64,000 nt of DNA, taken from assembly GCA_907165135.1 (NCBI GenBank), contig OU015567.1, positions 15,562,001 to 15,626,000 on the forward strand, given 5' to 3'. Below the pieces are notes generated by a model, which did not search any database, was not told where the DNA came from, and saw only the letters and a program-made list of their open reading frames with translations. Positions 14,244 through 57,567 of this stretch are shown one piece after another. This DNA is from Oikopleura dioica. Lineage: Eukaryota; Animalia; Chordata. The first letter of the stretch is position 1. Each line of letters starts with the position of its first letter. The translations under genes and the position numbers were made by a program.

Positions 14244-16129
14244 CTATTTTCTTAGAGTTATATTCCAGCGGACATAATGCCATCCTCCTGACTTGAGTTT
14301 GACCATTCCTTGTGAATCCGGCGTCAACTTCTTTGCCGAGTTGTAGATCTTCCCATCATAATCGCCAATATCGTCCGCGTCGGCTTGAAAGTCGACGCGT
14401 TTTCCTAAAAAATAAAAATCTCAAATTCAAAAATCAATACCGTTGTAAAGTAGCCACATTTTCCAGACACCATTGCCGCAGTATCTTTTGTCGCTGTATT
14501 GATGTCGGATCGTCCATCCAGCTTCTGTCACTTCTAAATTTTTGGAGTAATAAAACTTTATTTTGGATGAAAATCGCGTTGAAACAAAAATCAAAAACTA
14601 AAAATGCGATTTTATCAAAGTCCTTCAAATTGAATTCCGTAAAGCAAGCCGCCATTGCTCGGAGCACTCTTCGCACTGCATTCTCGTCGTGGGATTTTCG
14701 GACAGAGCCAGAGTCGAGACCAAAGAAATGACCAAATCCATTAATCGCAGCATTCGAACCAAAAGATCTTACAATTTCGTTGTTGCGCGCATTGTTGAGT
14801 CGTTTCAAATCCGCAATTTCTTTTTTCGACGATTTCTTCTCCTTAGAAAGTTCATTCTTCAACTCGATATTTTCCCGATTCAGCAACCCGTTGATTTTCA
14901 TCGTCGTATCCACTCTCGTTAGCCCAAAAGTCAGATCAGCCGGCAAAACTCGATTCTTCAACTGTTCGATCAAACTGACCAGCGCCGAATGAGTCATCAA
15001 CGCAGCAGCACTTTCCGCTCTTTCGCCGATTTCAACAACAAGACAACGCCGGATCAGACTTTCCATCGCCGGAAAAATGACTTCAGCAGGACGCCTGGCG
15101 TTGTGGACGATATTTGTCATCGTCTGGAACGGGTTCCCAGCAGTAAACGGATGTCTTGAATAATTGAACAAATAGAACATCGATTATTGACTGTTAAACT
15201 TTTGTCGAATCTTTCCTGAAAGTGCATAGCATTTGAAAAATGATGCCAACCGCCCAAACATCTTGACAAAACGAGAGAGGAGCCGAATTTCCTTGGGAAT
15301 TGATCACTTCTGGAGCCAAGTAGTCCATTGATCCAGCTACATCAGTGTGAACAGTTTCTGCAACAGATCGGGAAACGTTGAAATCGGCAATTTTCACCTA
15401 AATTGTTTGTTAAAATGACAAATGATGTTGTTACCTGTTGGCCAGCGGACATGAGGATGTTTTCAGGCTTGATATCCCGGTGCATGATATTCTTCCCGTG
15501 AATGTAGTCTTGAAATAAGGAGGTAAAAACTCTTTGTATCTGAGAAGCCTTACTCAGCGCTAAAACCAGTTGTGCGGAGATTCGTAAAGCATCGTTCTGC
15601 GCCCATGGTAGCTCGTTTTCGCTTCCTTCTGAAAAATGCAGTATTGCATGGAAATTTGAAATTAGAATTACGATTGTTGAGCATATCCTCGAAGAACTGC
15701 GCCAAATCACCGCCAGGAAGATATTCCAAAATCAAAGCGTGATATTTCAAGCCGTTGGGAGCGGTGAACTTGAAGTCGTCCAGTAGTTTAACAACAAAGT
15801 CATGATCTTCATTCATTTTCAAGAAAAATCTTATCAAAAACCCAAATTTGGAGCCTGAAAAAGGTGCAAAATCTAGCGCAAAAACGTTCCTTATTGTCGA
15901 AGCAAGTTAATTTCCAAATTGGCATCTCTTTCCTCCTTTTCTTCCAAAAGTCCTATTCCCTTGAGCATTCTCAACTCGTTTCCTGGGAGAGGAGAGAACA
16001 GTTAAGAATGACTATCACTAGAAATTTACCATTTTGCTGGTCCTCGACAACGTAGTAGATTTTTCCCTCTCTCGCCTCTTTCAGCTTCCGCAGAACTCGA
16101 TACCTGCCGTTCAAAATTTGGCCAATCAT
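14244..16129 (-). pseudogene. Kinase-coiled coil-VRWNI family member K1 (9 exons) with an in-frame TAA at 15893-15891
   Basis: Exons give MIGQILNGRYRVLRKL..., [27 protein letters not shown] and a C-terminal ...YVRWNITLRK*. Exon 2 ends CTT CGA CAA TAA G|gaacg where paralogs have CTA G|. Confidence 0.75.
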
Positions 16130-16662
16130 TCTCGAAATTTGACTCAAATCAAAGTATTCAAGTTCTAACTCTCCTTCTCAGTACACTGATGATGCGTTTG
16201 CGACACTTGCCATCTTTTGAATATTTGCATTGAACAAATAATTTTTTCAAGATCGAGTGTCAAGAGCTCCAAAACATCGATCTCGCGGAAAATTTTATAT
16301 ACATATTATAATATTTTGAAAAAGAATAAGAGTATTTTTGAATAATATTCTTTTTAACTTCAAATTAGGCCTTTTGACTCAAGTATTTGGACACAAAATT
16401 ATGGTGTTTCAATATTAACTTCAAAAACCTCCAGGCAAACGATAGCAACCCAAAAACCACAAAAAGTATCTGACCCATCTTCGTCAGACCCTGTAAATAG
16501 AGAGATCAAATACAGTGGATGCGCGGTGGTGACCCTTGTTCCCAGCGATATTTGCAGAATTTGAAGAAGGCGACATTTGCAAATAGTGAGCCGGCCCCGC
16601 TACATCGCCCCGTTTTGAGTTTTCTCATTCAGCAGAATCCCGATTTTCGTTACTCGTCGATT
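16130..16662. promoter_or_regulatory. Bidirectional promoter between K1 and K2 with octamer-like motifs
   Basis: Divergent ATGs lie 533 bp apart. ATTTGCAT at 16223-30, ATTTGCAAAT at 16575-84 and TGACTCA at ~16140. Confidence 0.5.
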
Positions 16663-19600
16663 ATGGAAGGAAAAATCATCAACGATCGTTACAAGGCGAT
16701 CAGAGAATTGAAGGAGCCCAGAGATGGGAAGATTTACTACGTCGTCGAGGATACCAAAAACGGTAAGAGGGGCGAAATGGGAAGGGACGATTACGTAATG
16801 GTATTCAGACAACGAGTTGAAAATGCTGAAAGGAATTGGGCTCGTCACCGACAAGCAAGAAGAAGACGCGAAATCGGAAGTAGCGCTGCTTCAAAAACTA
16901 GGAATGGGGTTCTTTTTTGATGATGATATAAGAAAAGATAACTTCTCCTCGTTCATCACGATATCCCATAAAGACAACGACTACGTCGTCAAACTGCTAG
17001 ATGATTTCACCTTTACTGGTCCGAAAAATCTGGAGTATCACGCGCTGATCCTGGAATACCTTCCAGGCGGCGATCTGTCCGAGTATTTGAAGGAAAAACT
17101 TCTCAATGGTAACGTTTAGATTGAAAGGGCACTTCCTCACGTAAATTTTAGAGGGAAAAGAAACGGAGGAGCCCTGGGATGAAAACGAAGCTCTTCGAAT
17201 TACAGCTCAACTGGCTGTTGCTCTAGGTATTGTCATTTCGAATCGTATCAATGACTAACACTAACCCTTACTCTTTCTCAGATTACGTCCACAACCAAAA
17301 CGTCGTCCACCGAGATGTCAAGCCGGAAAACGTCCTTCTCTCCGCTGACAAGAAAACTGTAAGCAAATGATTACGTAACGAATTCAATCTAACAATCAAG
17401 GCGAAACTGGCCGATTTCAACATTTCGCGGACCGTCGAATCGACCATCAACACTGGCGTCGCTGGAACCTTCGATTACTACCCTCCTGAAACGATCAGCA
17501 ATCAGGAAAAAGAAAAATTGTCTTTCAGACGAGATATTTGGTCCTATGGAGTCGTCATGCAAATGCTTTGTACTTTCAGGAACAGTTTCTACACTTGCTT
17601 TTGTAATTTTCAACAATCAAATTAAGGGTATAGTTAGGTGTTATGGTAGAAAAACCGACCCCACGATCACCTTTTATAAACTTCTTATTTGAGCCAGAAT
17701 AAGAATCTTCAGGTTGCGGCGATCATTTTGGTACCAAATTCATCGAAATCCGACTTTTTCGGCATACAGGTAGCATGTGAAGTCCCAAAATGAGCACTAC
17801 AAATTTTCTAGCGCCCGGAAAGGTTAATAGTCCAGCCTATCTGGACGCCCCCAATTCCAGACTAAGACTAAGAATAAGGGGCGTACTGGTAGGCTGGTCA
17901 TCCCTTTCCGGGCGCTAGAAAATTTCAACTGCTCATTTTTGGACTTCAAATGGTAGAAAATGCCGAAAACCAATTTGAGTTCGTTTTATTTGCAGTCGCT
18001 TAACGTTTTCGGAACAGCAAAAGTTCCATCATCAGAGCCGAAGTCTTGGAGTTACTTGTAAACCTTCCAAAAACAGACAAACGTACCTCTGATGATGGAA
18101 CTTTTGCTGTTCCGAAAACGTTAAGCCACTGCAAATAAAACGAACTCATTTATCGACGAGATGTCATCATTTATGAAAACCAATTTGTATTTCATGAATT
18201 TGGTACCAAAATGATCGCCGCGACTTAGAGATTCACATTCTTGCTCAAATAAGAAGCAAAAAGGCGATCATGGGGTCGATTTTTCTTCCATAACACCTAG
18301 GTAGAGTGAAAGGCTGTGATAAAAGCGTGATTAAAGATACATCTTTTATATAAGCCATTTCGGAACGGCCTACATATTCCCAGGCCCGAGATTTAAGCCC
18401 CTAAATTGGCCAAATCGACGCATTTACCCTTAAGTTTTGGGTGACCTACGGTTCGTCAGGAAATGCCCCAGAGCTACGGTTCGTCAGGAAAAAATACCCT
18501 CCTGACGAACCGTAGGTCATTTTTGGTCATCTCTAGAACGGTCTCATAGATCTTGTTTTTTGCCCCGTATGGGTCAACAAGAAGAAAAGGTAGGAAAAAT
18601 TTTTCAATCTTACTGCCCCTAACCACGGGGCTTCGCCCCTTAGGTCCTAAGATGCCGGGGTGTAGTCTAGGGTTAGTTAGGGTTACTGAAGGTAACTCAG
18701 ACAGAACTCGGGTGACCTTGTTCTGTCATTTTTCTCCGTGTCCCTAACCCTAACCTTAATTTAACAAGTAGTAACAATCGGGAATCGCTCAGTTTGCGTA
18801 CCAAATAGTATTGGGGATCAAAAATGAGAATTTTCAAAAATAATTTTTTTCAATTTTCAAAGTTTTATTGATTTTCGCTGATTCTTGAGCTCAAAGCGAC
18901 CTTTTCTAACCAGCTCGATTTCTACCTTAGCTACTAGAAAATTAAAAATTTAGTTCAAAAATTGAATTTGGCAAAATTTGTCAAGGCCCTCACGTCTACA
19001 TAGGACGTCATGTGACTATGAGAATAGGATATTCTGATAGAACAGGTCCGAAACCTTGGAGAATGATTAAAATATCATCAAAAATATAAACCTACGCGTT
19101 CTATAAGCGTAATATTCTAAAATAGAGCGGAGGACCTTTGCTCAGGTCTTCCACCAGAAGAGGACCCTCTTCTTGGAAAAAGAGTTTATCCCTTCTCTAG
19201 AAGCGTAGGTTAATATTTTTGATGATTTTTTCTTCAATCCCCAGAGAATCGATGGCACTCTTTCAGAAACTGGTGACCTTACATCACTGTAACCTTACTG
19301 TAAGCTGTGAGAGGCTTGACAAAATTTAATGCATTTTTCAAATCTTCATTTTCCACACCCATTGGAAAACAGAAGAGAACATATGCCGCATATGATATGC
19401 GCTCCGCGCCTGTCTTGTAGAAAACTTTGAAAAATATATGTAAGATTATCAATCAACAAAAACTACAGAAAAATGTTTTCAAAGAAGTCTCCACGTTACC
19501 ACGATACATTTTAGAAATGAACGAACTATGAGAAAAGTCTCCTCGTGACCGCATATCACCTCTCAAACGTGGTTATTAATCGTGTTTCTAGAACGATATC

Positions 19601-20710
19601 CCCTCAACTACGGTTCGTCAGGAAAAAAAAATACCTTCCTGACGAACCGTAGGTAACCGTAAGTTTTCATTTTACTAAACGAGAAACTGTTGTAAGAAAC
19701 CCTTTCGCGACTGGAAATCTTATCCAAACGATCAACAACATCGCCCAAAACATTCGAAATCCAGCTGAAGTCGCTTTTCCTGTCATGGAAAGTCTGATCA
19801 AGCAATGCTTGGTCGTTGAAGTTGGCGAGCGAGTTGAAAGCGTGACTGCTCTGATGAGGCACCCTGTTTTGTGGAGTTTAATTGAACAGCTCAAGAATCG
19901 AATCAAACCGGAAAACCTCGCTTTTGGCCTTAATCGATTAGAGACGAAGGATGTTATCAAGGATCATTTGATTGGGCAATTGCAGAGAATTGTTGCTGAG
20001 AATCAATGTAAAATCTCGAAGCTAACGGTCGAGAATACGAAAATGGCCGATTTTATGTCAACTGCTCGAAAAATGATGGAAGAAGCTGAAAAGAAAATCT
20101 CTAAGCTCTCATCTGAAAACCTTGAAAAGGAAAAGAAGAACTCTGAGCTTCAAGAAAAGGTTCACATTTTGGAGGCGAGTAAGCAAAGTCAAATTTTCGG
20201 AACAGTACTCGATGGATTTGGATTTTACTTTGGCCTTGATTCTAAATATGTACGAGAAGATCACTCTGAAAATGCAGTTCGACAAGTGTTGCGTGTAGTG
20301 AACTCCGGAATGAGACACTTCAATTTGAAGGAATCGGATTAACTCGTTTTTTGATTTTTGATGATTTTTGTTTCGACGCGATTTTCATCCAAAATAAAGT
20401 TTTATTGGCCAAGAAATTTAGAAGTGTCAGAAGCTGGATGGAGAATCCGACATCAAACGAGGGACGAAGACGAAGGCGGCGACGGGCAATTCTGGAAAAT
20501 GTGGCTAACTTGCAACGGTATTGATTGTTGAATTTGAGATTTTTACTTTTAGGAAAACGCGTCGACTTTCAAGCCGACGCGGACGATATTTGCCATCGAG
20601 ATGGGAAGAGCTACAATTCAGCGAAGAAGTTGACGCCAGATTCACAAGGAATGGTAAAACTCGAAGGAGACTATGTTTATGTCCGCTGGAACATTACAGT
20701 TCGACAATAA
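16663..20710 (+). CDS. Ser/Thr kinase-coiled coil-VRWNI domain protein K2 (9 exons; 2.1-kb intron 6)
   Basis: [17 protein letters not shown]..., ELKMLKG, HRDVKPEN, LADFNISR, YYPPE, DIWSYG; after intron 17580-19696 comes RNPFATGN..., a coiled coil, GFGFYFGLDS and a C-terminal ...YVRWNITVRQ*. All junctions are in phase. Confidence 0.85.
17635..18299. mobile_element. Fold-back MITE (TAGGTGTTATGG termini) containing a nested second hairpin element at ~17978-18187
   Basis: Outer arms are reverse-complementary. An inner near-perfect ~62-bp inverted repeat (TGAGTTCGTTTTATTTGCAG...) is bounded by a 13-bp direct repeat, GAAAACCAATTTG. Confidence 0.8.
18477..18512. repeat. ~40-bp hairpin mini-element CGGTTCGTCAGGA-n-TCCTGACGAACCG; other copies at 19611-19649 and 41663-41703
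   Basis: Three copies with 12-13-bp arms, each flanked by CTA/TAG. Confidence 0.8.
19056..19243. mobile_element. Small fold-back element in K2 intron 6
   Basis: ATCATCAAAAATATAAACCTACGCGTTCTA is mirrored by TAGAAGCGTAGGTTAATATTTTTGATGAT. Confidence 0.6.
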
Positions 20711-21577
20711 TTCTGTATAAATAATAAAAGAAGAATTAAAAAAACAGGTGGAGCAATTTACTGCATTTATTCGATTATCGTATTCTCGGCATCTCTTGAA
20801 CATTGAGAAAAAGTTTTTCTGCAGTTCAAAAAAGCGTCTTCCAATGCTTTATCAATAAATGCGCCTTGGTGATGTGTCGATAAGCAGTTTGGGAGTGGAT
20901 GTCTCATTTGAGGAAAAAAGGGGCCCTTTTTTGGAGACATGGAAGAAACTATGTAAAATCATGTTTTCGAACTTGAAACAGTCGTTTTCGTGGAAGAACA
21001 TCAATATTTACGCACTGATTCGATCCCCATCGGAGACTTTTGTTTTGTTGCCAATATTGATTTGCTTTCATTCAGTCTCGGTTACAGGTTTTTCCATCAA
21101 AAATTCTCAATATAAAATTTAGAAATATCAATTTTATAAAAAAAGTCCTTCAAATTTTAAAAATAAAAAAAATTTCAATAAAAATCATCAATAATCAAAG
21201 CTCCTATTGCTAAATAATTCAACAAAAAAGGGTTCTTTTAATCAATTCGCGGTCGAAAAAAATACAAAAAATCGTACTCGCCTGGCCGGGCGGCTGAAAG
21301 AGAGGAGAACCGGGCGAGGGAGGATGCGGCGATTAAATTTTGATAAGGTGTGTTGAGAATTCGGAGTGTTCTAAAGGAGCAGAAGCATTTTTTGGACGAA
21401 ATAAGCTGCGGGATCGATACCTCCGCTATTCGGCTCCGTCTCCGCGCGCTCCTCTATTTTCCTTCTTTCTTTTTTCTATCTCGCTCCTGATCACCGAAAA
21501 CAGCTACGGGACTTTCTATTCCGATTTCTTGCAAAGATTTTCAAAAGAGAAAAAAGAAGAAGAGAAAGAGGGATTAA

Positions 21578-29415: not shown

Positions 29416-30377
29416 TTATTTCAAAATTGTAATATTCCAGCGAACGTAATGATTACATCCTTCGAGTTCAACCATTCCTCTTGAATCCGGCGTCAACTTC
29501 TTTGCCGAGTTGTAGATCTTCCCATGAACATTCATCTCGTCCGCTTCGGCTTGAAAGTCGACGCGTTTTCCTTAAAAATAAAAATCTCAAATTTAACAAT
29601 CGATACCATTGAAAGTTATCCACATTTTCCAAAAGCCGTCGCCGCCGAAGTCTTCGAGCCTCGATCGATGTACGATTGTCCAGCCAGCTTCCGTCAGTCT
29701 TAAATTTTCGCCAGCATAAAACTTTTTTTGGATGAAATTCGCGTCGAAACAAAAATAAAAAAAGCTAAAGAGGCGATTTTATCCAATTCCTTCAAATTAA
29801 ATTTCGTAAAGCCGGCAGCCATTCCTTTGAGCACTCTTCGCACAGCGTTTTCGTCGTGGGCAAGTCGGAATTCGCGGGAATCAAGCTCGTAGAAATTCCC
29901 GAATCCATGTTTTGCAGGAAATTCGAAAACATTGCGAATAATTTCCAGTTGAGCAGCAGATTTTTTCATTTCGTCAAACTCATTTTCGGCTCTTTCCTTC
30001 AAAAATTTCAGCTTTTTAATTTCTCCCTCTAGTTTCTTCGTGAAAGATTCAGTTGTTTTTTGAACCTCTTCGATCTGAAAATCGCGCTCCTGGTTTCCAA
30101 GATTCGAATTCTCTTTGAAAGACTCAAGTTCAGCAACTCGTTTTTCCAGCTCATCATTTTTCGCCTTCAATTCATTTTTCTCTTTCTCCAAAGCACGGAA
30201 ATCAAATGCCAGGCTTCGGAAAGTCTCGTTGTCTTTTTCCAGCTTTTCGACTCGATCAAAAATCGATTTCAATGTTGAATCATCAATTTTCCTGCTGTTC
30301 TCGGTAGAATTCTTCCCTTTGTTTTTGTAGTAGCTACTTCCGAGAGAGCTTTCAGATTGTTGGTCAGCGTTCTGCAT
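29416..30377 (-). CDS. Kinase-less family member K3: coiled coil + VRWNI domain (3 exons)
   Basis: The 225-aa ORF (long coiled coil, HGFGNFYELDS...AVRRVLKGMAAGFTKFNLK) splices via a GA-AG and a GT-AG intron to FYAGENL...WKMWITFNG and KRVDFQAEAD...YVRWNITILK*. No kinase motifs were found upstream. Confidence 0.85.
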
Positions 30378-34011: not shown

Positions 34012-35844
34012 TCAGTTGAGAAGTTTAATATTCCAGCGGACATAAGACCATGTGCCTTTGACTTTTACCATTCCTTCTTGATCCGGCGTCAATTTTTTCG
34101 CCGAGTTCTTGATCGTCCCATCATTATTGGCAATAGAGTCCGCGTCGGCTCGAAAGTCGACGCGTTTTCCTAAAAAATAAAAGTCTCAAATTCTGCAATC
34201 AATACCTTTGAAAAGAATGCACATTTTCCAGAAGCCGTCGCCGCCGCAGTGTTTGCTCCACGATTGATGTCGAATCGTCCATCTAGCTTCGGTCACTTCT
34301 AAATTTTTCTCGTAATGAAACTTAATTTTGGGTGAAAATCGCGTCCAAACAAAAATCTAAAAATTAATAAATGCGATTTTATCTAATTCCTTCAAATTGA
34401 ATTCCGTAAAGCCAGCCGCCATTGCTTTGAGGACTCGTCGAACTGCAGCTTCGTCGTGGTGTTGTCGGACAGATTGAGAGTCGACGCCGTTGTAAAATCC
34501 AAATCCAATTTCCCATAGATTTCTGGCGTTGTGATGATCAAGATAAAATTTCTCGAAAAAACTGCATCTCTTCGTAATTTTCTCAATTTTATCGCTTTTC
34601 TCAATATTCTCGTTGTTCAAATGCTCGCTGATTACTTCCGTCGTTTCGACCCGATTCTTCCCAAAAACCAAGTCCTTAGGCCGAATTCGATTTTGAAGCT
34701 GTTTGATCAAACTGACAATTGAGCGATGATTCGTCAAAGCTGCTGCGTTTGCTGCTCTTTCTCCGGGGTCAATTTTGAGACAATCTTGGATCAGACTTTC
34801 CATCGCCGGGAAAACTACTTCTGCCGGATTTCGCAGGTTTTGGGCGATATTGTTCATCGTTTGGAGCAAATTTCGTGTCGCGAAGGGATGTCTTTTTTTG
34901 TTTCATCAAAAATTAATAAGCTGAAACGGCTTTTAAGAAGAGAAAACAAGTCCTGAAGGTGCAGAGCATTTGAAAAACGATTCCCATCGCCCAAACATCA
35001 TGCCCAAAAGTAACATTCTCATCTCCTTGGCCCTGAAGACTCTCTGGAGGAAGAAATTCCATCGATCCAGCCACACCGGTATTCATAGTTCCTTCAAACA
35101 GTCGGGAAACGTTGAAGTCCGCGATCTTCACCTAAAAGTTAAAATAAATAAAGGCTTTTAGACGGTAGCATACGAGTTTCTGATCTTCAGAAAGCAGTAT
35201 GTTCTCGGGCTTGATGTCTCGATGGATGATATTTTCACCATGAATGTATTCTGAAAACTCTTAAAAATCGTTATCATATTTTGTCAGTTACTCATAGCAA
35301 GAACAAGCTGCGCTGAAATTCCAAGAGCATCGTTTTCGACCCATTCTTCCTCGTTTTCTCCCCATTCTAAATAAAGTAAAGAGGCATTTTGATTGAAAAA
35401 CTCACCATTTTCAAGCATTTTCTGGAGAAAAGTCGCCAAATCTCCACCTGGCATGTATTCCAAAATCAAGCCATGGTAAGGAAGATTGTCTGGAGACGTA
35501 AAACTCATGTTGTCGAGAAGTTTTACCACGTGGGGGTGGTCTTTTTCAGGGCTAAAACTGGTCACTTTTAGAAAAAGAAGGCTCCTGTTAATCATTTTCG
35601 CCTATTCCTAGTCGATTGAGAAGGTTGACTTCCTGATTTGCATCTTGCTTTTGTTTTTCATCAAAAAGCGCGATTCCTTTCAGCATTTTCAGCTCGTTCC
35701 CTATTTTCAAATTTCAAATTTTCAGCACTTTTCATCCGACTAACCATTTTCAAGATCCTCAACGACCCAGTAAATTTTGCCATCTCTGGGCGGCTTTAGC
35801 TCTCGAATCGCCTTGTATCTTTCGTTTATCACAAAGTTTTCCAT
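34012..35844 (-). CDS. Ser/Thr kinase-coiled coil-VRWNI domain protein K4 (9 exons)
   Basis: [17 protein letters not shown]..., [35 protein letters not shown]..., ...[10 protein letters not shown]. Intron positions match K1, K2 and K5. Confidence 0.85.
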
Positions 35845-38405: not shown

Positions 38406-40780
38406 ATGGTTGTTTCCTTTGAAAGAGAAGATTATTGTGTTTGCGAGAAACATTGGGGACTCGGTGCAATTGACTTTTTTGACGATATGATTACCGATAA
38501 AAATAACGAGTCTATTACTGATTATTTTTTCTATAACAATACGGTTTTTGACGCAGAGCAAACCCCGAGCAAACCATGGTTCGACCAGATATTTATTATC
38601 GTGCATTATGGGACTCTGATAGTCGGCCTCCCAGCGAATATCATCATTCTTTTTATCATAGCGTACAATTGGCGAACTAAATCATCATTTTCTTGCCTTG
38701 TTTTGAATTTGACAATCGCTGATATGGTACTGATGAAGTACTTGAACTATCAGCCGTATATTGATGGTAAATTTTCAAGTTTTCATTTTCAAACTATTGT
38801 TTTTAAACAGGTGACGCGAAATTTCCACAATTACAGGGTAGGCCTTCATTACTCATTATCCATTAAAAATGATTAATAAATTTGGAAGCTCTGCTCGGTT
38901 TTTATCAATGCCTTGAAAAGTGTAAATTTGATTGGGGATGTCACGTCTTTTCCTCCTGCTTGTCATTTTTCTCGATATCAGGTAATTTGCTTTTAAACAT
39001 ATTTGCTTTAAAAGATGCCTTTTTTTTGATCAGCCGTCGCTTTTGACAGATTTTATGCGATTGTCAAGGCAGGCCCTGGAGAAAATCACGGCTTTCGTCT
39101 TTCAGTAATTTACGGAATAGTTTGGACTCTTTCACTGTTGATGACGATACCGCTGATTTATTTCGCATATGCAGTTAATGATGGTGAAGTTTATATTTGT
39201 AATCATGTTTGGACAATGAAGTCGAAAGACGAATGCACAGTTAATGGATACAAAAAAAAGATGTAGCTGCTAGAATTAATCTTTTCATCAGAAATCAAGG
39301 GTTTCTGATGGTATGATTGACGCGGAAAAATATATTTTTTTATCCTCGCAAAGCGCTTTTATTAAAAAAGGAAAACAGAAGTTTTCTTGATTGCCCCGAA
39401 AATGACCCTTTTGGAAGGGTTCCTCTCTGATGGCCATCACGTATACTCAGGTGCAATTGAGCTGAGCTGAGCTGTCCATTTTTGAGAGGTCATTGAGCCG
39501 AGCTGAGCTGAGCTGACGTTTTTTTTAAGGTAGTTGAGCTGAGCGGACCCTTTTTTAGAGCTGAGCTGGTTGAGCTAAGGTGAGCTGTTTTTTTCTGAAT
39601 TTTTACTTGTAAACAAGACTTGTTTAACAAGTGTAGTCTGAGCTAGGCTAAGCGAGCCTTGTCCTCAAATAATTGAGCTGAGCTGAGCTGAGAGATAATT
39701 GCCTGAGCTGAGCTGAGCAAAACAGATCATTTTTGAAAATAACTGAGCTGAGCTAAGCGCCTGCTCAGCTCGCTCAGCCGGCTCAGCTCAGAAAGTTTGC
39801 AACTCTGAGCATGGGGAGAAAAGAAGACCCTTAAATTCATAAACAGTTTAGTAATGACCACAAGAGGCCATGACCACGAGGGGAACCCTTCCGAATCTAT
39901 CTTTAATTGGTGTGAACAACCAAAGTACTTCCTCGAAAAACTTTACTACTTTACATTCGCCGTTGTTGTTTTTCTTATCCCCATTACTGTCAGCATCACT
40001 TCTTACATATTTATTATGAAGAAAAATAACAAATTACAAAATTCTCTTAAAAACATTGGATCGGTAAATAATGGCGCGCGTTCAAGGAGAAATTTAAATA
40101 TGATGATTTCAATTTACGCTGGTAATTCATAAAAAGATTTTTTTTGATTATTTTTTGCGTTTCTCTTTTTTTAGTAACAACGTCGATCTGGTACGTCCCT
40201 TACATGTGCTTCATGATCATTGTTGTATTTGAAATTCCTTTGTCAAAAGTTCATTGCGATGTATTTGGAAGATTAGCGGAAACTTGTGTTATCATTACTC
40301 CACTTTCGAATGCAATCGTTTACTCATTTCTCGGAACCAAATTCAGGAAGCAGTGTTTTTTGACTTTTGCGGTAAGAATACTTATCCACGCTTCTTTATT
40401 CTTATCCAGGATAGAGTTGCAAATTTTGCTTTATTTTTAGTAGTAAAATTGTTCTAAAATCATTGATCTGACCTGAGCTGAGCGATAATTGTCTGAGCTG
40501 AGCAGATCAGATCATTTTCGAAAATAACTGAGCTCAGCTGAGCTGAGCGACTGCCAGCTTAGTTTACTAAGCTTCGTTACTGTGATCCTTAACAAAATAC
40601 TGAAAATGAATCCTTTCAAATTTAATTGTATTTCAGAAAATCTTCAGATCTAGAGATCGTTTACGACGAAAACAACCTCTCACAAGAAGTTCGACAGAAT
40701 TTTCCAGGAAAAAATTTTTGAAAACTGAGAGACCACCAGTAATACTTTTCAACGAAGATTCTTGTCGATTCCCAGCTTAA
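38406..40780 (+). CDS. Class A (rhodopsin-like) GPCR, peptide-receptor-like; TM3 could not be fully reconstructed
   Basis: TM1 GLPANIIILF, TM2 LNLTIADM, AVAFDRFYAI, TM4 IVWTLSLLMTIP, TM5 FLIPITVSITSY, TM6 IWYVPY, TM7 TPLSNAIVYSFLGTKFRK, and last exon 40637-40780. Confidence 0.8.
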
Positions 40781-42004: not shown

Positions 42005-45000
42005 ATGATTGATGAAGAAAACAGTGACAATGATGAAAAATTGCAACAACCTAAGGTTCAGGTTTGTGAGATTTCTTTTATGAAAAAACAAGATAAAATA
42101 AGTGCTTGGATTGTCATTGCATCGGTGTTCTCAATCAAAAAGATGATAAAGTATATCTTGTACCAGAAGAGGTCTTATCTTCTCGAAGCATCCGTACGCA
42201 AAGGAAAGATTTGAATGCAAAATCGTATAAAAAAGTCATAAAAGGGAAAATTACTTTGACAAAACATGGATTCTCAACAAATCGCCAACTGCAAGTTTAT
42301 CTTGGAGGGGGTTCTCTTTTCTGGATATCAATCATGCTTCTAAGTATGGACTTCTCAGTAATTTTTATAATATCGCGTTCTTAGCAAATTTCATCTCGCT
42401 AGAAAGATCAAAAAACAAAACAACTTTTTTGACTTCGACTTGTCATCGAAACTACAAAAGATGTGTCCGTACTGAATCAATTGATACCTGCGGTTATTTA
42501 ATGAAAAAATGCCGGGAAACAAAACAATTTATCCTTCCAGAGCCAGTTACAACTGCTCGAATGAAAGAACGCTTGCCAAAATCATTCTCCGAGGAGGAAA
42601 ATAAATTGAATTTACGTCGCTGTAAAAAGAAAAAATTTTATGACACGAAAGTCTGCCGGCATCTATGCTCAAAAACGCTTGTCTTAGAAAACAGTCGGAA
42701 CAGTTTCATTTCACCCTGTGAATCAATTTGCTTCCAGCTAACACGATCCTTTGATTCTGCTGGAGAAATTTGTCCAACAGAAAAGTACTGCAGATCAGGA
42801 TGCCCTTGTCCTTTTTACGATTGCGAAAAATTGGGCACGCATCAAACACTGACTCCTGTTTTTAATTTACAGGGGTCAAAGTATTCAGGAGAAAACACTA
42901 CTCATTCACCATTAATTGAATCAACGTCAACGCAGTATCCATCAACCTCAACATCATTGTGGTCGTTGACAACACCGACAAAAATAATAAGTTCTGAAGG
43001 ACTTTTGGAATCAAAAAGGAACATGCCATTAGATTTTTTCATTTTGAACCGGTTGTCGAGCGTTCCGCTCCATAAAAGTGGAACGATTGTTCACCTAAGT
43101 TTTCTAGGCCGCCTGCAAATTTTCTTCTAAAAAAACTTGGCGAACATGAACCTACTACTTCCGGGACCTTTTTCATGACCATCACCGGGTGTTATTTGTA
43201 CTTTAAGGGATCCCACCGATTCGGCCAACTTTGAGGTCGAACTTCTTTTTTTCGGGCTTAGCTATCTTAGAAGTTAGAGGCATTTTTTGAAGCCCATTTC
43301 TTAATGAGAAATCTCTAGTAAGAAAATCAAAATTGGAAAAGCGAATCACCTCTAAAAATAGCCCTGAAGACATTGATAGTCGCCAAAACCCTTGTTTTGG
43401 GCCATTTTCAAAATCGATCTACTTTTTTTCCCTCTGATATATTCCCCCGATCTTGTTCTTAAAACTTTCCTTGTGCCCTTAACTACAATCTATAGTACAG
43501 GCATCTGATGTTGTCAAGGATTGTAGATTTTTTCTTTACAAAAACTTTTACGACTGATTTTAGCCATTTTTAAGACTTTCTATGCTCTGTAGCGCCTCTA
43601 AGTGGCTAAATATTCCATCGAAACTATTTTTTCTTGATTCAGCTTCGTCTAAGCTATCCACAGAGCACTCATTCATAAGAATCTGTCGATAAATTTTTTG
43701 GTCGAAATTAGCCATTTTCAAAGCTCTGTCACTGCTCATCACGTGGCGTTACCCCCTTGACATAATATATAAAAATGATCCTCAGACAATGGAGATTTTA
43801 AAAAGGTATCACAGAAAAGCCCTCGATGACATTTTTCAAATCGGGAGGGGATCCCTTAAATAATATTATTGTATCTGATTCATTCATCATAATAAAATTT
43901 AAATTCTCTTTAGATACCGTTCTACGCTCGGCAACGGGCAGAAATTGTTTACTTTATATTATATAAAGAATATAACAATCAAACAACTTAAGTTTCCACA
44001 AAAAGATGATAATCCCGTAGCTATTGAATTGATAACCGGCCGTTGGGAAAATCGGCAGCCAAAAGAGCGCTTTTATCCAATTCTTCTAATTGACTTTTAT
44101 GGGAGTGAAAAGCAATTTAAAGTTAATGCCTCAGATTCTCTTTTCCACTATGAACGTTTTTTTATAATATTACCTTTTAAAATTAAAAATAAGCAAGATT
44201 TATTTTAAAATTAAAGCTCACTATAAAGGATAAAACGTTGAATATTGAACTTTTGTAGCGCCGAATCCCTTTTACAAATTAATTCATTTTTTAAAGAAAC
44301 CCTACCTCAAATCTACCGAAGACTTAAAAATTCCCCTATGTTAAGTATTATTTAAATCTTAATATCCATTTCTAAAGAAAACAGACCATTATTCTCTGAA
44401 AATTACCACTCAAAAGATGAATCTGACTCGAAGATTTAAAAGATTGAAGCCTCATCTCCAATCCAGCGGTGGATTATAGTTGTCAGTTAACTTTCGTCCA
44501 AGCTGTCGACAAAATTTCTCGTGTAAAATAGGAAGAGCGATGGCTGAAAGAGATTCTCTTCTCGCTCTCACTGCGCGCGCCAATCTCAATTTCGAAGTAC
44601 AATCAAAAACCAGTTCATAGAAGCCTTAATTTTCAATATTTTTACAAAATCCACCGCAAGATTGGAGATAAGGCATCAATCTTTCATATCATCGAGTCCG
44701 ATTTACCTTTTTAGTCGAAACTTTCAGAGAATAATGGTCTGTTTTATTAAGAGGTCGATTCTGAGGTTGAAACACTCTTAAAAGCACTAAAAATAAGGTT
44801 ATTTTTGAAATCAACAGTAAATTTTGAGTAGGGTTTCTACGAAATATGAATTAATTCGTAGCAGGGATTTGGCGCTACGAAAGTTCAAAATCCAAGGCTG
44901 TATCCTTTGGAGGTATCCCGGGACCTTTTAGCTTCATTTTTAAAAACATCAATGAAAAAATGATAAGTCAATAGGCGCAACATTTCTCGGCGGCGAACAC

Positions 45001-45450
45001 TATTTGGTCGATGCGAAAGGAAATTTACTTAGACTGAAGGAAACCAACGACGATCCCATATTTATTCCAAAACGTGATCAACGACTGTATGCTTGATTTA
45101 TTACGCTTCGTTAAATTATTTAAGGGGTTTTTTTGTTTTTCATTTCGGTTCATCGATTGGAACCCATCAAATCGAAATTCGTCGAAAAGACAAAGGCAGA
45201 CTCATTTTTCCTGTTGTCGCTATTTGTGATGGTTAAAGAGCTCAATTCTTAAGAAAATTTTTTTAATGACTAGCTTGTTTTGACCTGTCTCAGTTCGCCA
45301 ACTGGTAGATCAGATAAATGTTATTACTATGCACCAGACTACAATTTGAACCGTTTCGAGGAAGCCCAAGGCTTCATAGCAAGCAATCATTTCAATGCGA
45401 AAACATCTTCTATAAGCTTCGGCGGGACCTTTTATCTGATGAGTGTCAGG
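42005..45450 (+). CDS. Cys-rich (CPTEKYCRSGCPCPFYDC) protein of the kelch-like propeller-associated family; probably partial, 5' end uncertain
   Basis: ORF 42429-43130 has many Cys and a Thr/Ser-rich stalk. An exon at ~43990-44110 (RFYPILLIDFYG) and a fragment at ~45290-45450 (KCYYY...SSISFGGTFYL) follow. Confidence 0.45.
43207..43855. mobile_element. 649-bp TTAA-flanked MITE (TIR GGGATCCC), intronic
   Basis: TTAA at 43203-06 and 43856-59. Confidence 0.85.
44246..44887. mobile_element. Degenerate ~640-bp fold-back element
   Basis: TGAACTTTTGTAGCGCCGAATCCCT is mirrored by AGGGATTTGGCGCTACGAAAGTTCA; inner arms (CAGACCATTATTCTCTGAAA; CTCCAATC..GCGGTGGATT) also pair. Confidence 0.7.
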
Positions 45451-46418
45451 CTCGGCGAACGGTGGATAAAACTGTCGACAACTGTTGCCCTTAACCGAAT
45501 AAGAAAGACTGAAGAAATGGAAAAAGGATGGCGCAAAAATGAGATTGGCTTGCCTGCCGAATTCAGAGATTTGGATCCGGTTCACGTCTTTCCATTGAAT
45601 AGGGTTCTATTTTATTGTCGTGTTAGGATCATAAATAAACATCTGGGTTCGAAAAAAATTTAAAGCCTACTGTACACGGACTTTTTGACTCGAGACGATG
45701 GCTGTCGATTTCGAGTCCTTTGAAATTACTATGAAATTTTTTCCGGGTAGTCAGCAGATTTTTCTGCGGGTAATTCGCGTGTAAACCCGTGCAAGTAGAT
45801 CGAGTTACATTACAAGTAATGGGTTATGGATAATCGCGAGCTACTTAGCCGCAAGGAGAAACCTAGTATCGCGAGTAGACCGTGAAAAGACTCTCTGCGC
45901 AAGTAATTCGTTGAAAAATCTGCGGATTGCCCGAAACCGGTCATGCTAAAGACCGTAAATATGATTCTAAGAAAATCAGATTTTTTTTTCAAACGATCGT
46001 TAACGTCGGAACGCATAAAATTTTTTCAACGTTGAACGCAGATCGTACCAATTAATTGGTATGCCCATTTTACCCCTTTTTAACAATGAAACTAATTAGT
46101 TCACTGTAAAAATGATACAGATAAATAATTCTAAAAAAGCTTAACTTCAATTTTATGTGTTAAAATGGCATTACAGGGCGTTCTTTCAATCAATTGGTCG
46201 CTGTACGTTTTGGAGTTAACAATAGGAATATAATCAGTTGAAGTAATTAACGGCTATTTAACCTTTCCGGAGCATAAAAAAGCAGCGATTCGGCTTAAAA
46301 TAAAGTAAAGTAAAGTAAAGCTCTTTTTTCACATCAACCAAGATTATTCAACTATATAACTATAGTCTGGGATGAATGGTTATATTTAACCCTAATAAAG
46401 ATCGACGTTGGTCGTCTG

Positions 46419-49400
46419 ATGCTCATTCTCGTGACAAGAAGCATTTTACTTTCTAACACTCTTTACTCGTTATTACTAGAGGCCGAAGGAAAATTCTTGC
46501 AATTAGGTAGCGAATGGATTGGATCACTTGTTCAATACGAAAAAAACTCGCGATGTTTTTCAAAATTATTTACTTCCAATGATCCGTCATACACTGATCA
46601 TATTCAAAACAATAACGATGAATGTGAATACTTTGGTCAAGGAATCATAAGTGGCGAGAAGCTCTTCATACAAAATTATGTATTTGACGCTACATTTGAA
46701 ATAGAATTCAATTTCGGGAAGTTTAAAAATAGAAAATATTTTTAGTAAGAAAATTAAATTTTTGAACAATAATTCAGAGAAAATAGACATTAACTTCGTT
46801 CAAATGAAAGAATTTGGAAAAATGCACGTCACGAGCAATCCATATTTTGCTTTTCACGACGATATTTTTCCAGCATTTTCGAAAAATGCGATCGCTCAAC
46901 AGCCATTTCCTTCAGCCCCAAGTTCGATGTCTCAGCCTGTTCCTAAGACGATTGTCCCAAATATTGCATTTACATCACTTGAAGAGATTCGGCATATTTC
47001 ATCACTTGAATTAAAATTTAATCAAACGGAAAGCTTTAAAATGCAATTTTTTATTCAGGTAAGAAATTAATACGCATTTTAAAAAAATTATTTTATTAAA
47101 AATCGGTAAAATAGATCACAAGCAAAATAAATTAAGGACGTTAACTATGAACACAAGTTTTCTGAAAGCAAATTTCTTGATGAAAAGATTTTATTTATCT
47201 TTGGAACTTACACAAATGGGTCTGTTTGGATTGACTCTGATTATTACGATGGAAAAATAACTGTTAATTCGACTCTAGCTAATTGGATAGACATCGAATT
47301 AAAATTGAAATATAATGAAACATCGGACTCAACTACAGTTGAAATATCAGAGGTTCAAGGAGTACCTCGGGTACCTGATTTAGTGTCGCTTTTTTGGTCC
47401 TGAAATTCCGAAAAAACGACACTAAATTGGAATCGAATGGTTGCCGATATGAAATTCGAAGTTATAATAACTCTTTATTTTTTCTAGTATCTTTAGATAT
47501 TTTTCTGGTTACTGGCACCAATTTTGAGCCTTATTACTCAGAATAAAGTGCCTCTTGAATTTATTTGGTCGGAACATCGCAAAATAGTCGTTTTTACTCA
47601 TAAAAATCAATTTTGAAATGACTAATAATATTGGGGCATTTCGCATGGAGTTTATAGAACATGCTGTTTTGTGTTTTTAATATTTAAAAAATTGCAATTC
47701 TAGCGAAATTTAGTGGCAAAAACAGTGTTGTTCGAAAAAGCGACACTAAATTAAAATTTGCGGGTTCCCGCTCTTCGAAAAAAGCGACACTAAATTGGGC
47801 GACACTAAATCGGGTACCTGAGGTATTTCAAGAAAGAAGACAATTCAAAAAAATGCATGGACTTAATTCTATAACAGAAAAAAAGCTCAGAGTTTTTAAA
47901 TATGGTCATAATACTCAGATCAGAAATTACTTCTATTGTACTGAACAATCGACCCAGATAACTGTGATTCTACCGGACCTTTCAAGGAATCTTGAACCCC
48001 CTTATTCATTCCTTGCGGACGGATCGATTGATGATCAAGTTTCCTTGTCACCGCCATTATTTTATGAAAATGCCGGTTATGGAATAGCAGAATACACATA
48101 CAATTCAAAAAGCGCGTTTGTTAATAACAAACTTCATATTTTTGGTGGCTATCCGTCAAGTAAAAAGGTAAATATTTTATCTTGATTTTTGAAAATTAAC
48201 ATGATATTCGATTAAGAATTGAAGAAAGCTCAGCTCCGGTCCGCTATAGGAAAAAAATTTTGCTCAGCTCCGCTGATCTAAAGGTTCCCTTTGGAAGATA
48301 AATTTTGAGAAAAATTTGCATAAAAAAGCCTTATTTTCACGATTGGGGATCCTAAATTTTGATTGTTAGATCAGGGTTGAGCCCATATGAGCATATTTTA
48401 AAGCAATATTGAAATTTCTATATAAAAGCGTGATCAATTGTTAAGTCGGCGCTCTTTGACCAGATCCAAAGATATAAATTACGTCATATAATACACCCAA
48501 CAGAACATAATCAAGCCATATTTTTTATAGATTGCGCGATTAGATGGTTGCAGATTTACTCAATTGCCAGTTGAACTACTAAAGAAATATTATTTGGGTC
48601 ACGGGGCCTTGACAATGTATGGAGGAAAAAAAGGTTTAAGCGAATCAATATTTTTTTTTGTAATACAATTTTAGCAATCATTTGCTTCGACATTTATGCT
48701 CAAAAACACTGCGATCTTTTTGATGGAGAAAATGTCCAACGAATTTCCTCTACAATAAATAGAAACGAACGTGCTGGTCTTGCTCTTTACAATAGGCGTC
48801 CAACGGTGGTTGGAGGCTGGAGCTCAAAAGGTGCAGTTGAGCAATTTAACGGGGATGTATGGATCGAACTCGAGAATCATCCAAGGTATTGATTATTGCG
48901 TACACAGTGAAGATAAGAGTAGGAATAAGAAGAACCATTTTTTTTTAATTCTTTACGGTCTAACGGTGAGAGTTTAACCTTTTGTTTGTAGAATAAAAAA
49001 GATTTTATCTTTGTTAAATCATTTAAATAATAGTTCATTATTAATGTATAAATTTTCGCGGAACATGTTCGCATTGTTCAGATGGATAAGAAGTGCGCCT
49101 GCCATTGGATTATCTTCAGGTGCTCTCCTTACAATTGGGGGATACGACTATGATAAATATGGTCGCTTAGACGAAATTTGGAAATTATATAATGACGTAT
49201 GGTCTCTTGTTGGTTATCTCGCACAGGTTCTTATTTTTCTTTCTTATTTACGTACCCCACCCCCAGCTCGCAAACATTTTGTGAACATTTTTCCCTTGCT
49301 CTTTAAATTAAATTTCATCGAATTCCCCTCGCTCCCTCTTATTTTTTTCAGCGCGATCCATTAGTCGCCATCTTTCTTTTAACCCCGCGCGCCCTTGTTC

Positions 49401-52856: not shown

Positions 52857-53036
52857 ATGGATTCGCTGCTTATTTTCTTCATGACTTTTGGACCAGTATT
52901 TGCTTTGCCGCTGCTTTATTATTGCTGTCAAAATGGGCCGGAATCGAGAAGAGGTGGAGGAGGAGACGGAGACGGGGGAGGAGATTTTGGCGGTGGAGGA
53001 GACGGCGGCGGCGGTGGTTGCGATGGTGGGGGATGA
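52857..53036 (+). CDS. 59-aa microprotein: N-terminal TM segment, Cys-Cys, Gly/Asp-rich tail
   Basis: MDSLLIFFMTFGPVFALPLLYYCCQNGPESRRGGGGDGDGGGDFGGGGDGGGGGCDGGG*. A pyrimidine-rich acceptor (TTATTCTAG) lies 2 nt before the ATG; Gly codons vary synonymously. Confidence 0.65.
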   Translation: MDSLLIFFMTFGPVFALPLLYYCCQNGPESRRGGGGDGDGGGDFGGGGDGGGGGCDGGG

Positions 53037-54516: not shown

Positions 54517-54854
54517 GGCGACATTCCGTGACATTTGGCGATATTCAGCGAAGTTTGGCCACATTCGGCGATATTTAGCGACATTCGACGACATTCAGCG
54601 ACATTCGACGATATTTAGCGACATTCAGCGACATTTGGCGACATTCGGCGTTATTCGGGGACATTCGCCGACATTCAGAGACATGCAAAGAAATTCGGCG
54701 ACATTTAGCGACATTCGGCGACATTCGGCGACATTCAGCGACATTCCGCGACATATGGTGACATTCGGCGACATAAGGCGACATTCAGAGACACTCAGAG
54801 TAATCCGGCGACATTCAGCGATATTCGGCGATATTCAGCGACATTTAGTGACAT
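54517..54854. repeat. Minisatellite, ~34 copies of a 10-bp unit (G/A)GCGACATT(C/T)
   Basis: A direct tandem array with scattered substitutions and no spacers. Confidence 0.9.
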
Positions 54855-55757
54855 AATTGGGGATCTAAACGTTAAACATTTTTTTAGTAGAGTCTTTATT
54901 GCATAAAGACGTCGCAAATGTTATACTTAATCGCGGCTTGTGCTGTTGGAATTATTGCATGTGAATCTGGCATGTTTTCGTAAAAAAATCGTTGCGGATC
55001 GAAAATCCTCTTAAAACGCAGGAGATCTTGTTCTTTCACGTTCCACGTAAATTTCACAAGTTCGATAATTATGATTAATCGCGTCGACCCGAATTAGCCG
55101 CGCAAATGGAACTATCAAATTAAACAACAGTAGTTGTTCCAAAGTGAGCGAAGAAACGCAATTAGCACGTTTTGCCAGGAATTTATTTTTCGCGAACGCG
55201 CGACATTTTCATAACTAACAAACGCACGCGTCTACCGACACTAACGCCCACTAATTACGCTACTTTAGGACGCCATTCTCGGAGGCCAGGAGTTTATGCA
55301 TTTATCAAATTTTAAATATAAGTTGAGTAATTTTAAAATTTCAATTTCAGTACCTTGAATATTAAATTGATAATTATAAATTTATATTTATTCAAATTAT
55401 AAATGAATTTTAAATTCTAATAACAGTGATTTTTTATTCTTGAATTTTAATTGAAAATTTTATTTTGATTGAAAAATTTTAAGGAAATTGACAATTTCCG
55501 GACGGCAGTTTTGAGAAGAATATAAGTCTTATTTTAGACCAATCAGATATTTGTTTTCCCCCGTTGGACCTGTCAGAAACCGGAGAAATATCAAGTTATT
55601 TTTTTCGTCAAAAATTGTCGATTCCCGGGACCAACCATATTTTTTGATTGAAAATAGAGCAGAATTCTGAGCAGTGTTTGCACAAAAAAATGCAAATATT
55701 TGTCCGGCAAAGCGATCATCAAACACCTCAAATTTCACAAAAGAGATACAGTTACAG

Positions 55758-57567
55758 ATGGAAGGAACAGTGATAAACGATAGGTATAAGGCGGTAAGAG
55801 AGCTGAAGCCTGCCAGAGATGGGAAAATTTACTGGGTTGTTGAGGACCAGCAAAAAGGTAAAAAAGAAAGGAAAAATTTTGAGAAATATTCTGGTAGGGA
55901 AAGAGTTGAAGATGCTCAAAGGAATTGCTCTTTTCGACGAAAAACAGGAGGAAGAAGCGAAACTTGAAGTTGATCTTCTTCGACGACTAGGTTCGGGTTT
56001 TGAAAATTTCGATTAAACGCCAGATGGCGGCGCTAAAGCGACCTCATATCCCCCAAAAAGACCATCCTCATGTCGTCAAACTTCTCGACGACATCTCATT
56101 TACTGCTCCGAACAACCAAAACTACCGAGGACTGATTTTGGAATATCTTCCAGGAGGCGACTTGTCGCAGTTCTTTCAGAAGAAACTCGAAAATGGTAGA
56201 TTAAAATTTTAAAAGATTTTGCAGTTTAAAAATTCTCAGAGGGAGGTGAAAATGAAGAAGAATGGGAAGAAAACGATGCTCTTGGGATTTGTGCGCAGAT
56301 TGTTCTTGCTATGAGTAAGTTTTTCCTTTATTAGACTGATCTTGATTGATTTAAAGACTACCTGCACGGCGAGAATATCATCCATCGGGATATTAAGCCG
56401 GAAAACATTCTTTTTTTTGCTGATGAAAAAGAGGTAGGTTTCATTGTTGAGAAATCGTCTTATCCCAAATTTGAAGATCAAAATCGCTGATTTCAACGTC
56501 TCCCGCGTGACTGAAGGAACCATGAGCACTGGTATTGCAGGATCAATGGAATATATTCCTCCAGAGAGTCTTCAAGCTCAAGGAAATGAAAATGCTTCTT
56601 TCAGTCTTGATATTTGGGCGATGGGAATCTTTTTTCAAATGCTCTGCACTTTCAGGTAAACTTTTTTTAATGTTTTTGTTTTCTTACTTCTTTGAAGGCA
56701 CCCTTTCGCGACTGGGAATCTCTTTCAAACGATCAACAACATCGCCCAAAATCTCCGAAACCCGGCGGAGGTCGTTTTCCCGGCGATGGAAAGTTTGATT
56801 CAAGAATGTCTCAAAATCGACCTTGGAGAAAGAGCCGCAAATGCAGCAGCTTTGATGAATCATCGCTCGATCGTCAGTTTGGTAAAACAGCTTCAAAATA
56901 GAATTCGACCGAAAGACTTGGTTTTCGGAAAGAATCGGGTGGAGACGACGGAAGTTATCAACGAGCATTTGAACAAGGAGAATTTGGAACTCAATGGGCG
57001 ACTTGAATTCAAAATTGAAACGATTGGAGAATTGAGAAAGATGATAACAGACAATATCCTGGCTTTCTTCGGCGATGCTTGGAAGAGTGGATTTGGATTT
57101 TACAGCGGCAACGACTCTTCATCTCTCCGAAAAGAACACGACGAAGATGCAGTGCGACTGGTGCTTCGAGCAATGGCAGCTGGGTTCACGACTTTTAATT
57201 TGAAGAGATTGGATAAAATCGCATTTTTTAGTTTTTTTGATTTTTTTTTTCGACGCGATTTTCATCCAAAATAAAGTTTTTGCGCGACAAAAATTTAGAA
57301 GTTTCGGAAGCTGGATGGACGATCCGACATCAATGGAGCGACGGCTTCTGGAAAATGTGGATTCTTTTGAACGGTATTGATTGTTGAATTTGAGATTTTT
57401 ATTTTTTAGGAAAACGCGTCGACTTTCAAGCAGACGCGGACGATATTCACTGTTTGAATGGGAAGAGCGAAAACTCGGCGAAGAAGTTGACGCCGGATTC
57501 ACAAGGAATGGTCAAACTCGAAGGATATTATGCTTTTGTCCGCTGGAATATAACCATTTTACAATAA
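55758..57567 (+). CDS. Ser/Thr kinase-coiled coil-VRWNI domain protein K5 (9 exons)
   Basis: MEGTVINDRYKAVRELK..., [35 protein letters not shown]..., SGFGFYSGNDS, ...FVRWNITILQ*. TTACAG acceptor directly before the ATG. Confidence 0.85.

Follow-up and report, generated by a model that had tools for sequence, protein, structure and literature searches.

Oikopleura dioica, a planktonic tunicate, is a key small-genome chordate. The stretch of its DNA analysed here (the window) is 64,000 nucleotides of chromosome 2 of the OKI2018_I69 assembly, positions 15562001-15626000, and it contains five paralogous genes, K1 to K5, four of which (K1, K2, K4 and K5) encode a kinase followed by a coiled coil and a conserved C-terminal domain. 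We consider that these genes are probably members of an Oikopleura-specific family whose proteins recognise targets in the cytoplasm, and whose C-terminal domain is an undescribed variable head. The idea of a diversified recognition module carried on a coiled coil had been put forward in an earlier note, made from the letters of this DNA alone. It now receives moderate support from the position of the variable residues in the loops of a predicted β-sandwich behind the coiled coil, from the replication of this pattern in a second subfamily, from the ratio of nonsynonymous to synonymous change (dN/dS) in the loops, and from the variety of effector domains to which the head is fused. The genome searched comprised 64.28 Mb in 19 contigs; the assembly is described as 64.3 Mbp in 19 scaffolds, with non-canonical introns making up 11% (PMC8008620).

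Architecture of the five genes

The Ser/Thr kinase motif pair HRD[IV]KPEN and ADFN[VI]S occurs four times in the window, in K1, K2, K4 and K5. Heptad-like open reading frames (ORFs) rich in Glu and Lys, and of varying length, lie upstream of the C-terminal domain in the window genes. The domain ends at window positions 14273(-), 20681(+), 29445(-), 34041(-) and 57538(+). All five copies expected from the earlier note were thus located, the common domain being longer than the ~90 aa proposed there: the conserved region spans ~130 aa and is encoded in three separate pieces, namely A, of 40 aa (GFGxF, then a predicted helix and FNLK), B, of 38 aa (EAGW ... WKMW), and C, of 51 aa (GKRVDF ... NSAKKLTPD ... 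VRWNI). The pieces are separated by two introns, and the features are as follows.

14244..16147, minus strand: K1, with kinase, coiled coil and variable domain (piece A 14623-14742, intron 1 14556-14622, piece B 14442-14555, piece C 14247-14402)
16663..20710, plus strand: K2, with kinase, coiled coil of ~75 aa and variable domain
20211..20330, plus strand: K2 piece A (GFGxF ... helix ... FNLK), hypervariable codons at 20244-20249 and 20256-20261
20331..20399, plus strand: K2 domain intron 1, non-canonical GA..AG, 69 nt, with the conserved core TTTCGACGCGATTTTCATCC in its 3' half
20400..20517, plus strand: K2 piece B (EAGW ... WKMW), hypervariable codons at 20403-20411 and 20460-20474
20518..20552, plus strand: K2 domain intron 2, GT-AG, 35 nt, phase 1
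20553..20710, plus strand: K2 piece C (GKRVDF ... NSAKKLTPD ... VRWNI) and stop codon, hypervariable codons at 20591-20602 and 20669-20677
29416..30377, minus strand: K3, kinase-less, with N-terminus MQNADQQS..., coiled coil of ~150 aa and variable domain (piece A 29790-29909, intron 1 29722-29789, piece B 29608-29721, piece C 29419-29568)
34012..35844, minus strand: K4, with kinase, coiled coil and variable domain (piece A 34390-34509, intron 1 34321-34389, piece B 34207-34320, piece C 34015-34167)
55758..57567, plus strand: K5, with kinase (7 coding blocks), short coiled coil and variable domain (piece A 57086-57205, intron 1 57206-57276, piece B 57277-57372, piece C 57412-57564)

Predicted structure of the C-terminal domain

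Searches and structure predictions used exon pieces, one natural read-through ORF and database proteins in place of joined, spliced models of the window genes. Pfam gave no match to the domain at an expectation value (E) ≤1 on ten members of the family (including P0021, P0012, P0011, P0047 and P0008), nor on the exon ORFs of the window, and on both sets the MATH models PF00917 and PF22486 were likewise unmatched. A genome-wide scan with MATH_2 gave 12 matches, none of them in the chromosome 2 cluster to which the window belongs. A profile of the family matched no sequence in the PDB, MATH chains included.

AlphaFold2 was used to predict a structure from an alignment (A2) headed by P0021, a relative and not a window gene. 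The model has a predicted local distance difference test score (pLDDT) of 90.2 and a predicted template modelling score (pTM) of 0.82, and consists of a long stalk helix (residues 2-28), a second helix (55-66) and eight strands forming a β-sandwich. The stalk helix precedes the domain, and may correspond to the oligomerising coiled coil of TRAF-N.

This model was compared with known structures. Foldseek placed Avr2, the MATH domain of SPOP and ToxA as the best matches, at E of about 1e-2; MATH-superfamily chains had probabilities of 0.85-0.99 and E of 8e-3 to 4e-2. In an exhaustive scan with VIA-align the leading chains were CBM56 (Z 5.7), the MATH domain of USP7 (Z 5.6, over 98 residues with a root-mean-square deviation of 3.5), SPOP (5.2), Fusarium Avr2 (4.8), Siah1 and TRAF1 (both 4.4) and TRAF6 (4.2), all of them under the background of 7-8 that the tool states for unmatched models. 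ESM Atlas returned only generic sandwich neighbours, with template modelling scores of about 0.5. No known family was matched by sequence, the Foldseek search advised in the earlier note reached E of about 1e-2, and no one-to-one orthologs were found.

MATH-superfamily chains recur among these best fold matches, with Foldseek probabilities that are high at E about 1e-2, and the UniRef name of P0047 is 'MATH domain-containing'. Taken with the layout of a coiled coil followed by a C-terminal β-sandwich, this could mean that the domain is a true, very divergent MATH/TRAF-C domain, the proteins being TRAF-like adaptors or kinases whose peptide-motif ligands lie along the sheet, as in TRAF, SPOP and USP7. 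We regard this as quite unlikely: neither the Pfam models on ten members, nor the genome scan, nor the profile search of PDB sequences connects the family with MATH, the Z values stay under 6 and so under background, CBM56 scores equally well, and the variable residues sit at loop tips, not in the sheet groove that MATH uses. The domain is thus treated here as an undescribed β-sandwich family with a weak resemblance to MATH/TRAF, which may reflect a remote relationship. The TRAF/MATH-like layout proposed in the earlier note stands as a weak resemblance in fold (Z 5.2-5.6), and fails at the level of the Pfam MATH models.

Variable loops

Among 17 intact copies, amino-acid entropy exceeds 2.5 bits at positions A11-12, A15-16, B1-3, B20-23, C12-14 and C38-40. 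Mapped on the model, these codons fall in the loop before the helix and in the loops between strands 1-2, 3-4, 5-6 and 7-8 (in P0021 numbering, residues 77-80, 96-100, 128-130 and 155-160, in addition to the pre-helix loop). The intervening loops (2-3, 4-5 and 6-7) are conserved. Four variable patches had been recognised before, with strings after RH that were quoted correctly; the patch in piece A is a fifth. Because consecutive strands reverse direction, alternate loops should share one pole, and the four variable loops would therefore lie together, opposite the stalk entry and the chain end. In a sister subfamily of 18 proteins, variability is found at homologous positions (43-52, 77-80, 97-100, 129-130 and 155-160).

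The set of loops is unique in every copy, the best match to any other copy being 16-32% over 19 residues. Length and reading frame are maintained in the loops. In K5 the loop after RHQ is shorter by 7 residues than its counterparts. In composition they are enriched in Tyr (10% vs 3%), Trp (6 vs 3), His (7 vs 3) and Ser (10 vs 5), and also in Asn. Since they are rich in these residues and carry an excess of amino-acid changes, the variable loops are most likely a binding surface that is kept diverse by selection.

Gene conversion by extant paralogs was considered as a source of the differences between patches, and was rejected, no copy sharing the loops of another.

Rates of change and selection

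Divergence among the paralogs, as the proportion of differing sites (p), of differing synonymous sites (pS) or of differing nonsynonymous sites (pN), is as follows.

Kinase synonymous sites: pS 0.68
Kinase introns: p 0.58
Scaffold of the domain: pS 0.51 (piece A), 0.27 (piece B) and 0.19 (piece C)
Intron 1: p 0.13
Intron 2: p 0.065
3' untranslated region: p 0.49
Loop codons: pN 0.64, pS 0.45

The paralogs are old, with the synonymous sites and introns of the kinase part being saturated. Pairwise dN/dS is 2.1 for the 16 most variable codons and 0.20 for the scaffold, as expected of purifying selection, with an intermediate class of codons at 0.9. Parsimony was also applied, on a tree from whose construction the loop codons had been excluded. 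It counted, for the loops, 308 nonsynonymous changes and 38 synonymous ones, giving a dN/dS of 1.74 (binomial P 4e-4); by the same counts, nonsynonymous change in the loops is 3.7 times as fast as synonymous change in the scaffold next to them. The comparison of loop codons across paralogs, which had been suggested as a check on the recognition module, therefore yields a ratio above one (1.7-2.1) by both routes. The two gene pairs that are youngest show 18% divergence in their kinase introns, and differ at 16/19 and 15/19 loop residues, an excess over the kinase intron rate with P of 2e-5 and 2e-4.

The same figures can be read without adaptive diversification, if in old paralogs the unconstrained loops drifted to saturation, and scaffold, silent sites and introns were kept alike by selection on RNA elements, by gene conversion, or by both. 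Such a reading would explain why the saturated kinase pS and intron p are about equal to the pN of the loops, why silent divergence declines from piece A to piece C, and why there is an intermediate class of codons near one, and it is in keeping with the selection on both domain introns across lineages that is described below. We nevertheless think it unlikely, as drift would not be expected to give more nonsynonymous than synonymous change within the loop codons themselves (P below 0.001), nor to leave the youngest pairs different at 79-84% of loop residues vs 18% of kinase intron sites. Nor does it sit well with the variation of the same loops in an independent subfamily, with their paratope-like composition, or with the retention of loop length and reading frame.

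There are several points that weigh against target recognition by diversified loops. For the young pairs, the loop excess is weak when it is set against kinase pS (P 0.011 and 0.14). As the variable codons had been selected for being variable, their dN is biased upward. Silent divergence in the 3'-most 400 nt shows no coupling to that in the kinase region (r -0.02), and therefore recombination or gene conversion muddies all of the tree-based and pairwise rates. On the structural side, the modelled protein P0021 is a relative of 35-40% identity and not one of the window genes, and the placement of the loops at one pole was deduced from the order of the strands and not from atomic coordinates. 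The glycine-rich loop of the kinase, moreover, is degenerate, and the DFG motif is DFN in all copies. Because the sites were picked by variability and recombination is likely, the sequence comparisons give moderate support to positive selection on the loops, a case that draws on controls other than the introns.

Introns of the domain

The earlier note had described an intron of 35-37 nt as almost identical in all five genes, and this is borne out. The intron (intron 2) is GT-AG and in phase 1 in every window copy, and its motif occurs 5 times in the window at ≤3 mismatches, vs 0 expected. There is a second conserved intron, intron 1, of ~68 nt, which is non-canonical (GA..AG). It must begin with GA and not GT because in-frame stops in several copies exclude any GT donor, and its junction, between NLK and F, is supported by a paralog that has no intron 1 (L024) and by P0011, the protein annotated for paralog L021.

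The core of intron 1, TTTCGACGCGATTTTCATCC, is 97% identical within the cluster. Its 20 nt are confined to the family, with 23 matches in the genome, 21 of them in the chromosome 2 cluster; the distant paralog L021 is without it. In the metagenome homologues L046 and L047, identity to the cluster is only 49-62% in exon DNA, but 90% in the 3' half of intron 1 and 70% in intron 2. Judged from such comparisons, both domain introns are under purifying selection, and they are therefore not usable as a neutral clock. This removes the force of one argument in the earlier note, that the loops diverge faster than the intron: it proves little when both introns are more conserved than the exons across lineages. 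That pieces B and C diverge so little at silent sites may be due to the constraint that acts on the introns, to gene conversion, or to both.

The conserved introns matched no Rfam family and gave no stable RNA fold (z-scores -0.16 to 1.36). A part of the intron 1 core, TCGACGCG, is complementary to CGCGTCGA, which is invariant at silent sites and lies at the start of piece C, and might pair with it. For the study of tunicate splicing, which is unusual, it is of note that both introns, one being a GA-AG intron, are better conserved here than the flanking exons.

Family size and subtypes

Exon C has 25 matches in the genome, at least 20 of which are on chromosome 2 between 15.55 and 15.86 Mb, 300-600 kb from the contig end. 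This cluster contains about 21 copies, the intron 1 core giving the same number of cluster sites, and a kinase is present in about 14 of them. Four are kinase-less, namely K3, L016 (chr2:15811365-15814514) and a tandem pair at 15.6537 and 15.6550 Mb. Since these four have intact reading frames and a common N-terminus of their own (MQNADQQS...), followed by a long coiled coil, K3 is, on its sequence, a member of a kinase-less subtype and not a truncation. The absence of a kinase from K3 had been noted correctly, none being found within 3.5 kb upstream, and the possibility then raised that K3 is a truncated gene does not apply.

Outside the cluster, remoter members are L021 (chromosome 2, 2.48 Mb, with a kinase), L024/P0086 (chromosome 2, 10.18 Mb, head only) and members on another contig. 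The cluster beyond 15.796 Mb, the paralogs at 2.47 and 10.17 Mb of chromosome 2 and the family at 12.44-12.46 Mb of contig C2 were seen as 3-kb loci. At least three copies are degenerate, with a frameshift in piece A, a split inside piece B, or only fragments of exon C. In the split copy (chr2:15788293-15789287(-) and chr2:15778847(-)), ~9.3 kb of foreign sequence apparently interrupts piece B where the second variable loop lies. Near the intact kinase-less gene L016, with which L022 was also noted, there are two orphan exon-C fragments within 1.3-2 kb.

A tandem, fast-evolving cluster, rich in copies, several of them degenerate, at 300-600 kb from a chromosome end, and with kinase-bearing and kinase-less genes interleaved, brings to mind selfish or conflict-internal elements, such as a toxin-antidote or drive system in which the two kinds of gene are the partners. 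This seems very improbable. Nothing specific speaks for it, kinase and kinase-less genes (about 14 vs 4) show no consistent pairing, and the J-domain and F-box effectors of the sister subfamily fit substrate targeting better.

An exhaustive HMMER search of 1.84 billion representatives matched 25 proteins, and a search starting from P0021 matched 63. All of the named matches are from O. dioica, the remainder being short entries from marine metagenomes and transcript catalogues. A word-indexed protein search with the unspliced ORF of L016 found nothing, and the exhaustive search was needed to find relatives. The sister subfamily (GGAGHF ... VRFNITIL), which comes mostly from other O. dioica assemblies and from metagenomes, has the same domain together with a J-domain, an F-box-like domain, both, or a coiled coil only. 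The effectors found by Pfam on different members are accordingly Pkinase, DnaJ and F-box-like: F-box-like was matched on P0033 (3e-6), and DnaJ with F-box-like on P0030, the F-box being N-terminal to the domain and present only in the sister subfamily. There is also a kinase-fused homologue, P0083, about 48% identical, on a marine metagenome contig.

Two proteins of a marine transcript catalogue, P0008 and P0032, are spliced exactly at both of the predicted domain junctions, and therefore transcription and splicing follow the model in at least some relatives. In the public annotation, several cluster genes appear to be wrongly spliced at the domain (P0018, P0053 and P0084), P0018 being annotated with a duplicated N-terminus in addition to the mis-spliced domain. 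For this reason, the public gene models are unreliable in this cluster, and the family is largely hidden in current annotation. A full-text search of the literature found no paper describing it.

The kinase part

Pfam recognises Pkinase (PF00069) in P0011 (5e-28) and in a K1 exon (2.4e-7). The catalytic motifs HRDxKPEN, the β3 Lys, the αC Glu and APE/PPE are present, with the Lys and Glu legible in the coding blocks of K5. Among PDB sequences the closest kinases are PDK1, STK17/DRAK and DAPK; the best match (E 8e-20) is over the C-lobe, and no close ortholog was found in that comparison.

The last kinase intron of K2 is ~2.1 kb long, vs the usual ~48 nt, and holds nested inverted repeats at window positions 17595-19680. 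Their arms are of 41-63 nt and 89-98% complementary, resembling those of miniature inverted-repeat transposable elements (MITEs), and the flanking exons stay in frame.

Proposed mechanism

In the arrangement that we propose, an N-terminal effector would be followed by a coiled-coil stalk of variable length and then by the C-terminal head of ~130 aa, made up of a helix and an eight-stranded β-sandwich. The effector would be a divergent Ser/Thr kinase in the window genes, a J-domain or F-box in the sister subfamily, and absent in proteins of the K3 type. The loops of the head would bind a target, and the effector would then act on it by phosphorylation, by recruitment of Hsp70 or by SCF ubiquitination. 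Kinase-less members could bind without acting, or could join the kinases through the coiled coil. Ligand binding, oligomerisation and kinase activity are all things that we infer, as is a part in host-parasite or genomic conflict. The family may have an immune role, and the roles that the earlier note had in mind, of a sensor kinase, of a decoy or adaptor, and in immunity or allorecognition, are conceivable.

A bolder version, to which we give little credence as it stands, is that a chordate shorn of most canonical innate receptors has built a germline repertoire of intracellular binders, in which a sandwich head with loops like complementarity-determining regions (CDRs) is mounted on kinase, Hsp70-recruiting or ubiquitin-ligase arms. 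The selected introns could then serve exon exchange, regulated splicing or trans-splicing, and so multiply the specificities.

Should the loops of the proposed target-recognition family prove to bind targets that are foreign or selfish, the design of effector, coiled coil and variable β-sandwich that is known from TRIM and TRAF proteins would have been invented here independently, and the family would provide an entry point into larvacean immunity. As a natural scaffold the domain is in addition compact, and four or five of its loops tolerate change.

Other features of the window

K1 and K2 are arranged head-to-head, and as their start codons are only 516 bp apart (window 16148-16662), a shared bidirectional promoter is suggested. 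About 900 bp upstream of the K5 start, window positions 54517-54845 hold 33 tandem copies of the 10-nt unit GGCGACATTC, with 72% matches, an array that reads as a spurious ORF of 144 aa. An ORF of 156 aa at 38406-38876 (+) has a hydrophobic, receptor-like segment. Pfam gave no match for this ORF, nor for those at 42429-43130, 45280-45663, 47853-48185, 49011-49364 and 63334-63861.

Comparison with known systems

The kinase part resembles the AGC/CAMK-like Ser/Thr kinases, such as PDK1, STK17/DRAK and DAPK, in its Pkinase match and in having HRDxKPEN, the Lys, the Glu and APE/PPE. It differs from them in having DFN for DFG and a degenerate Gly-rich loop, and in being without a close ortholog.

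In TRAF proteins, and in the MATH-BTB and F-box adaptor expansions of nematodes and plants, there is, as is predicted here, a coiled coil followed by an eight-stranded sandwich, with a rapidly evolving part that binds the substrate. The weak likeness in fold to USP7, SPOP and TRAF has been described above, and an F-box fusion, as in the sister subfamily, would make an SCF substrate receptor. The family differs from MATH proteins in that the sequence models are unmatched, in that an extra N-terminal helix is predicted to pack on the sandwich, and in that variability lies at loop tips, probably all at one pole, and not in the groove.

In layout the family is also like those TRIM proteins whose head is a PRY-SPRY (B30.2) domain, among them TRIM5alpha and the finTRIMs of fish, which have an effector, a coiled coil and a C-terminal β-sandwich in the same order. 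In these, as is proposed here, variable loops under positive selection carry the specificity, and the families are lineage-specific, tandemly expanded and cytoplasmic. The likeness is in layout only: Pfam found no RING, B-box or PRY-SPRY domain on any member examined or on the exon ORFs of the window, the Oikopleura effector is a kinase, J-domain or F-box, and the head is unrelated to that of TRIM and is found only in Oikopleura.

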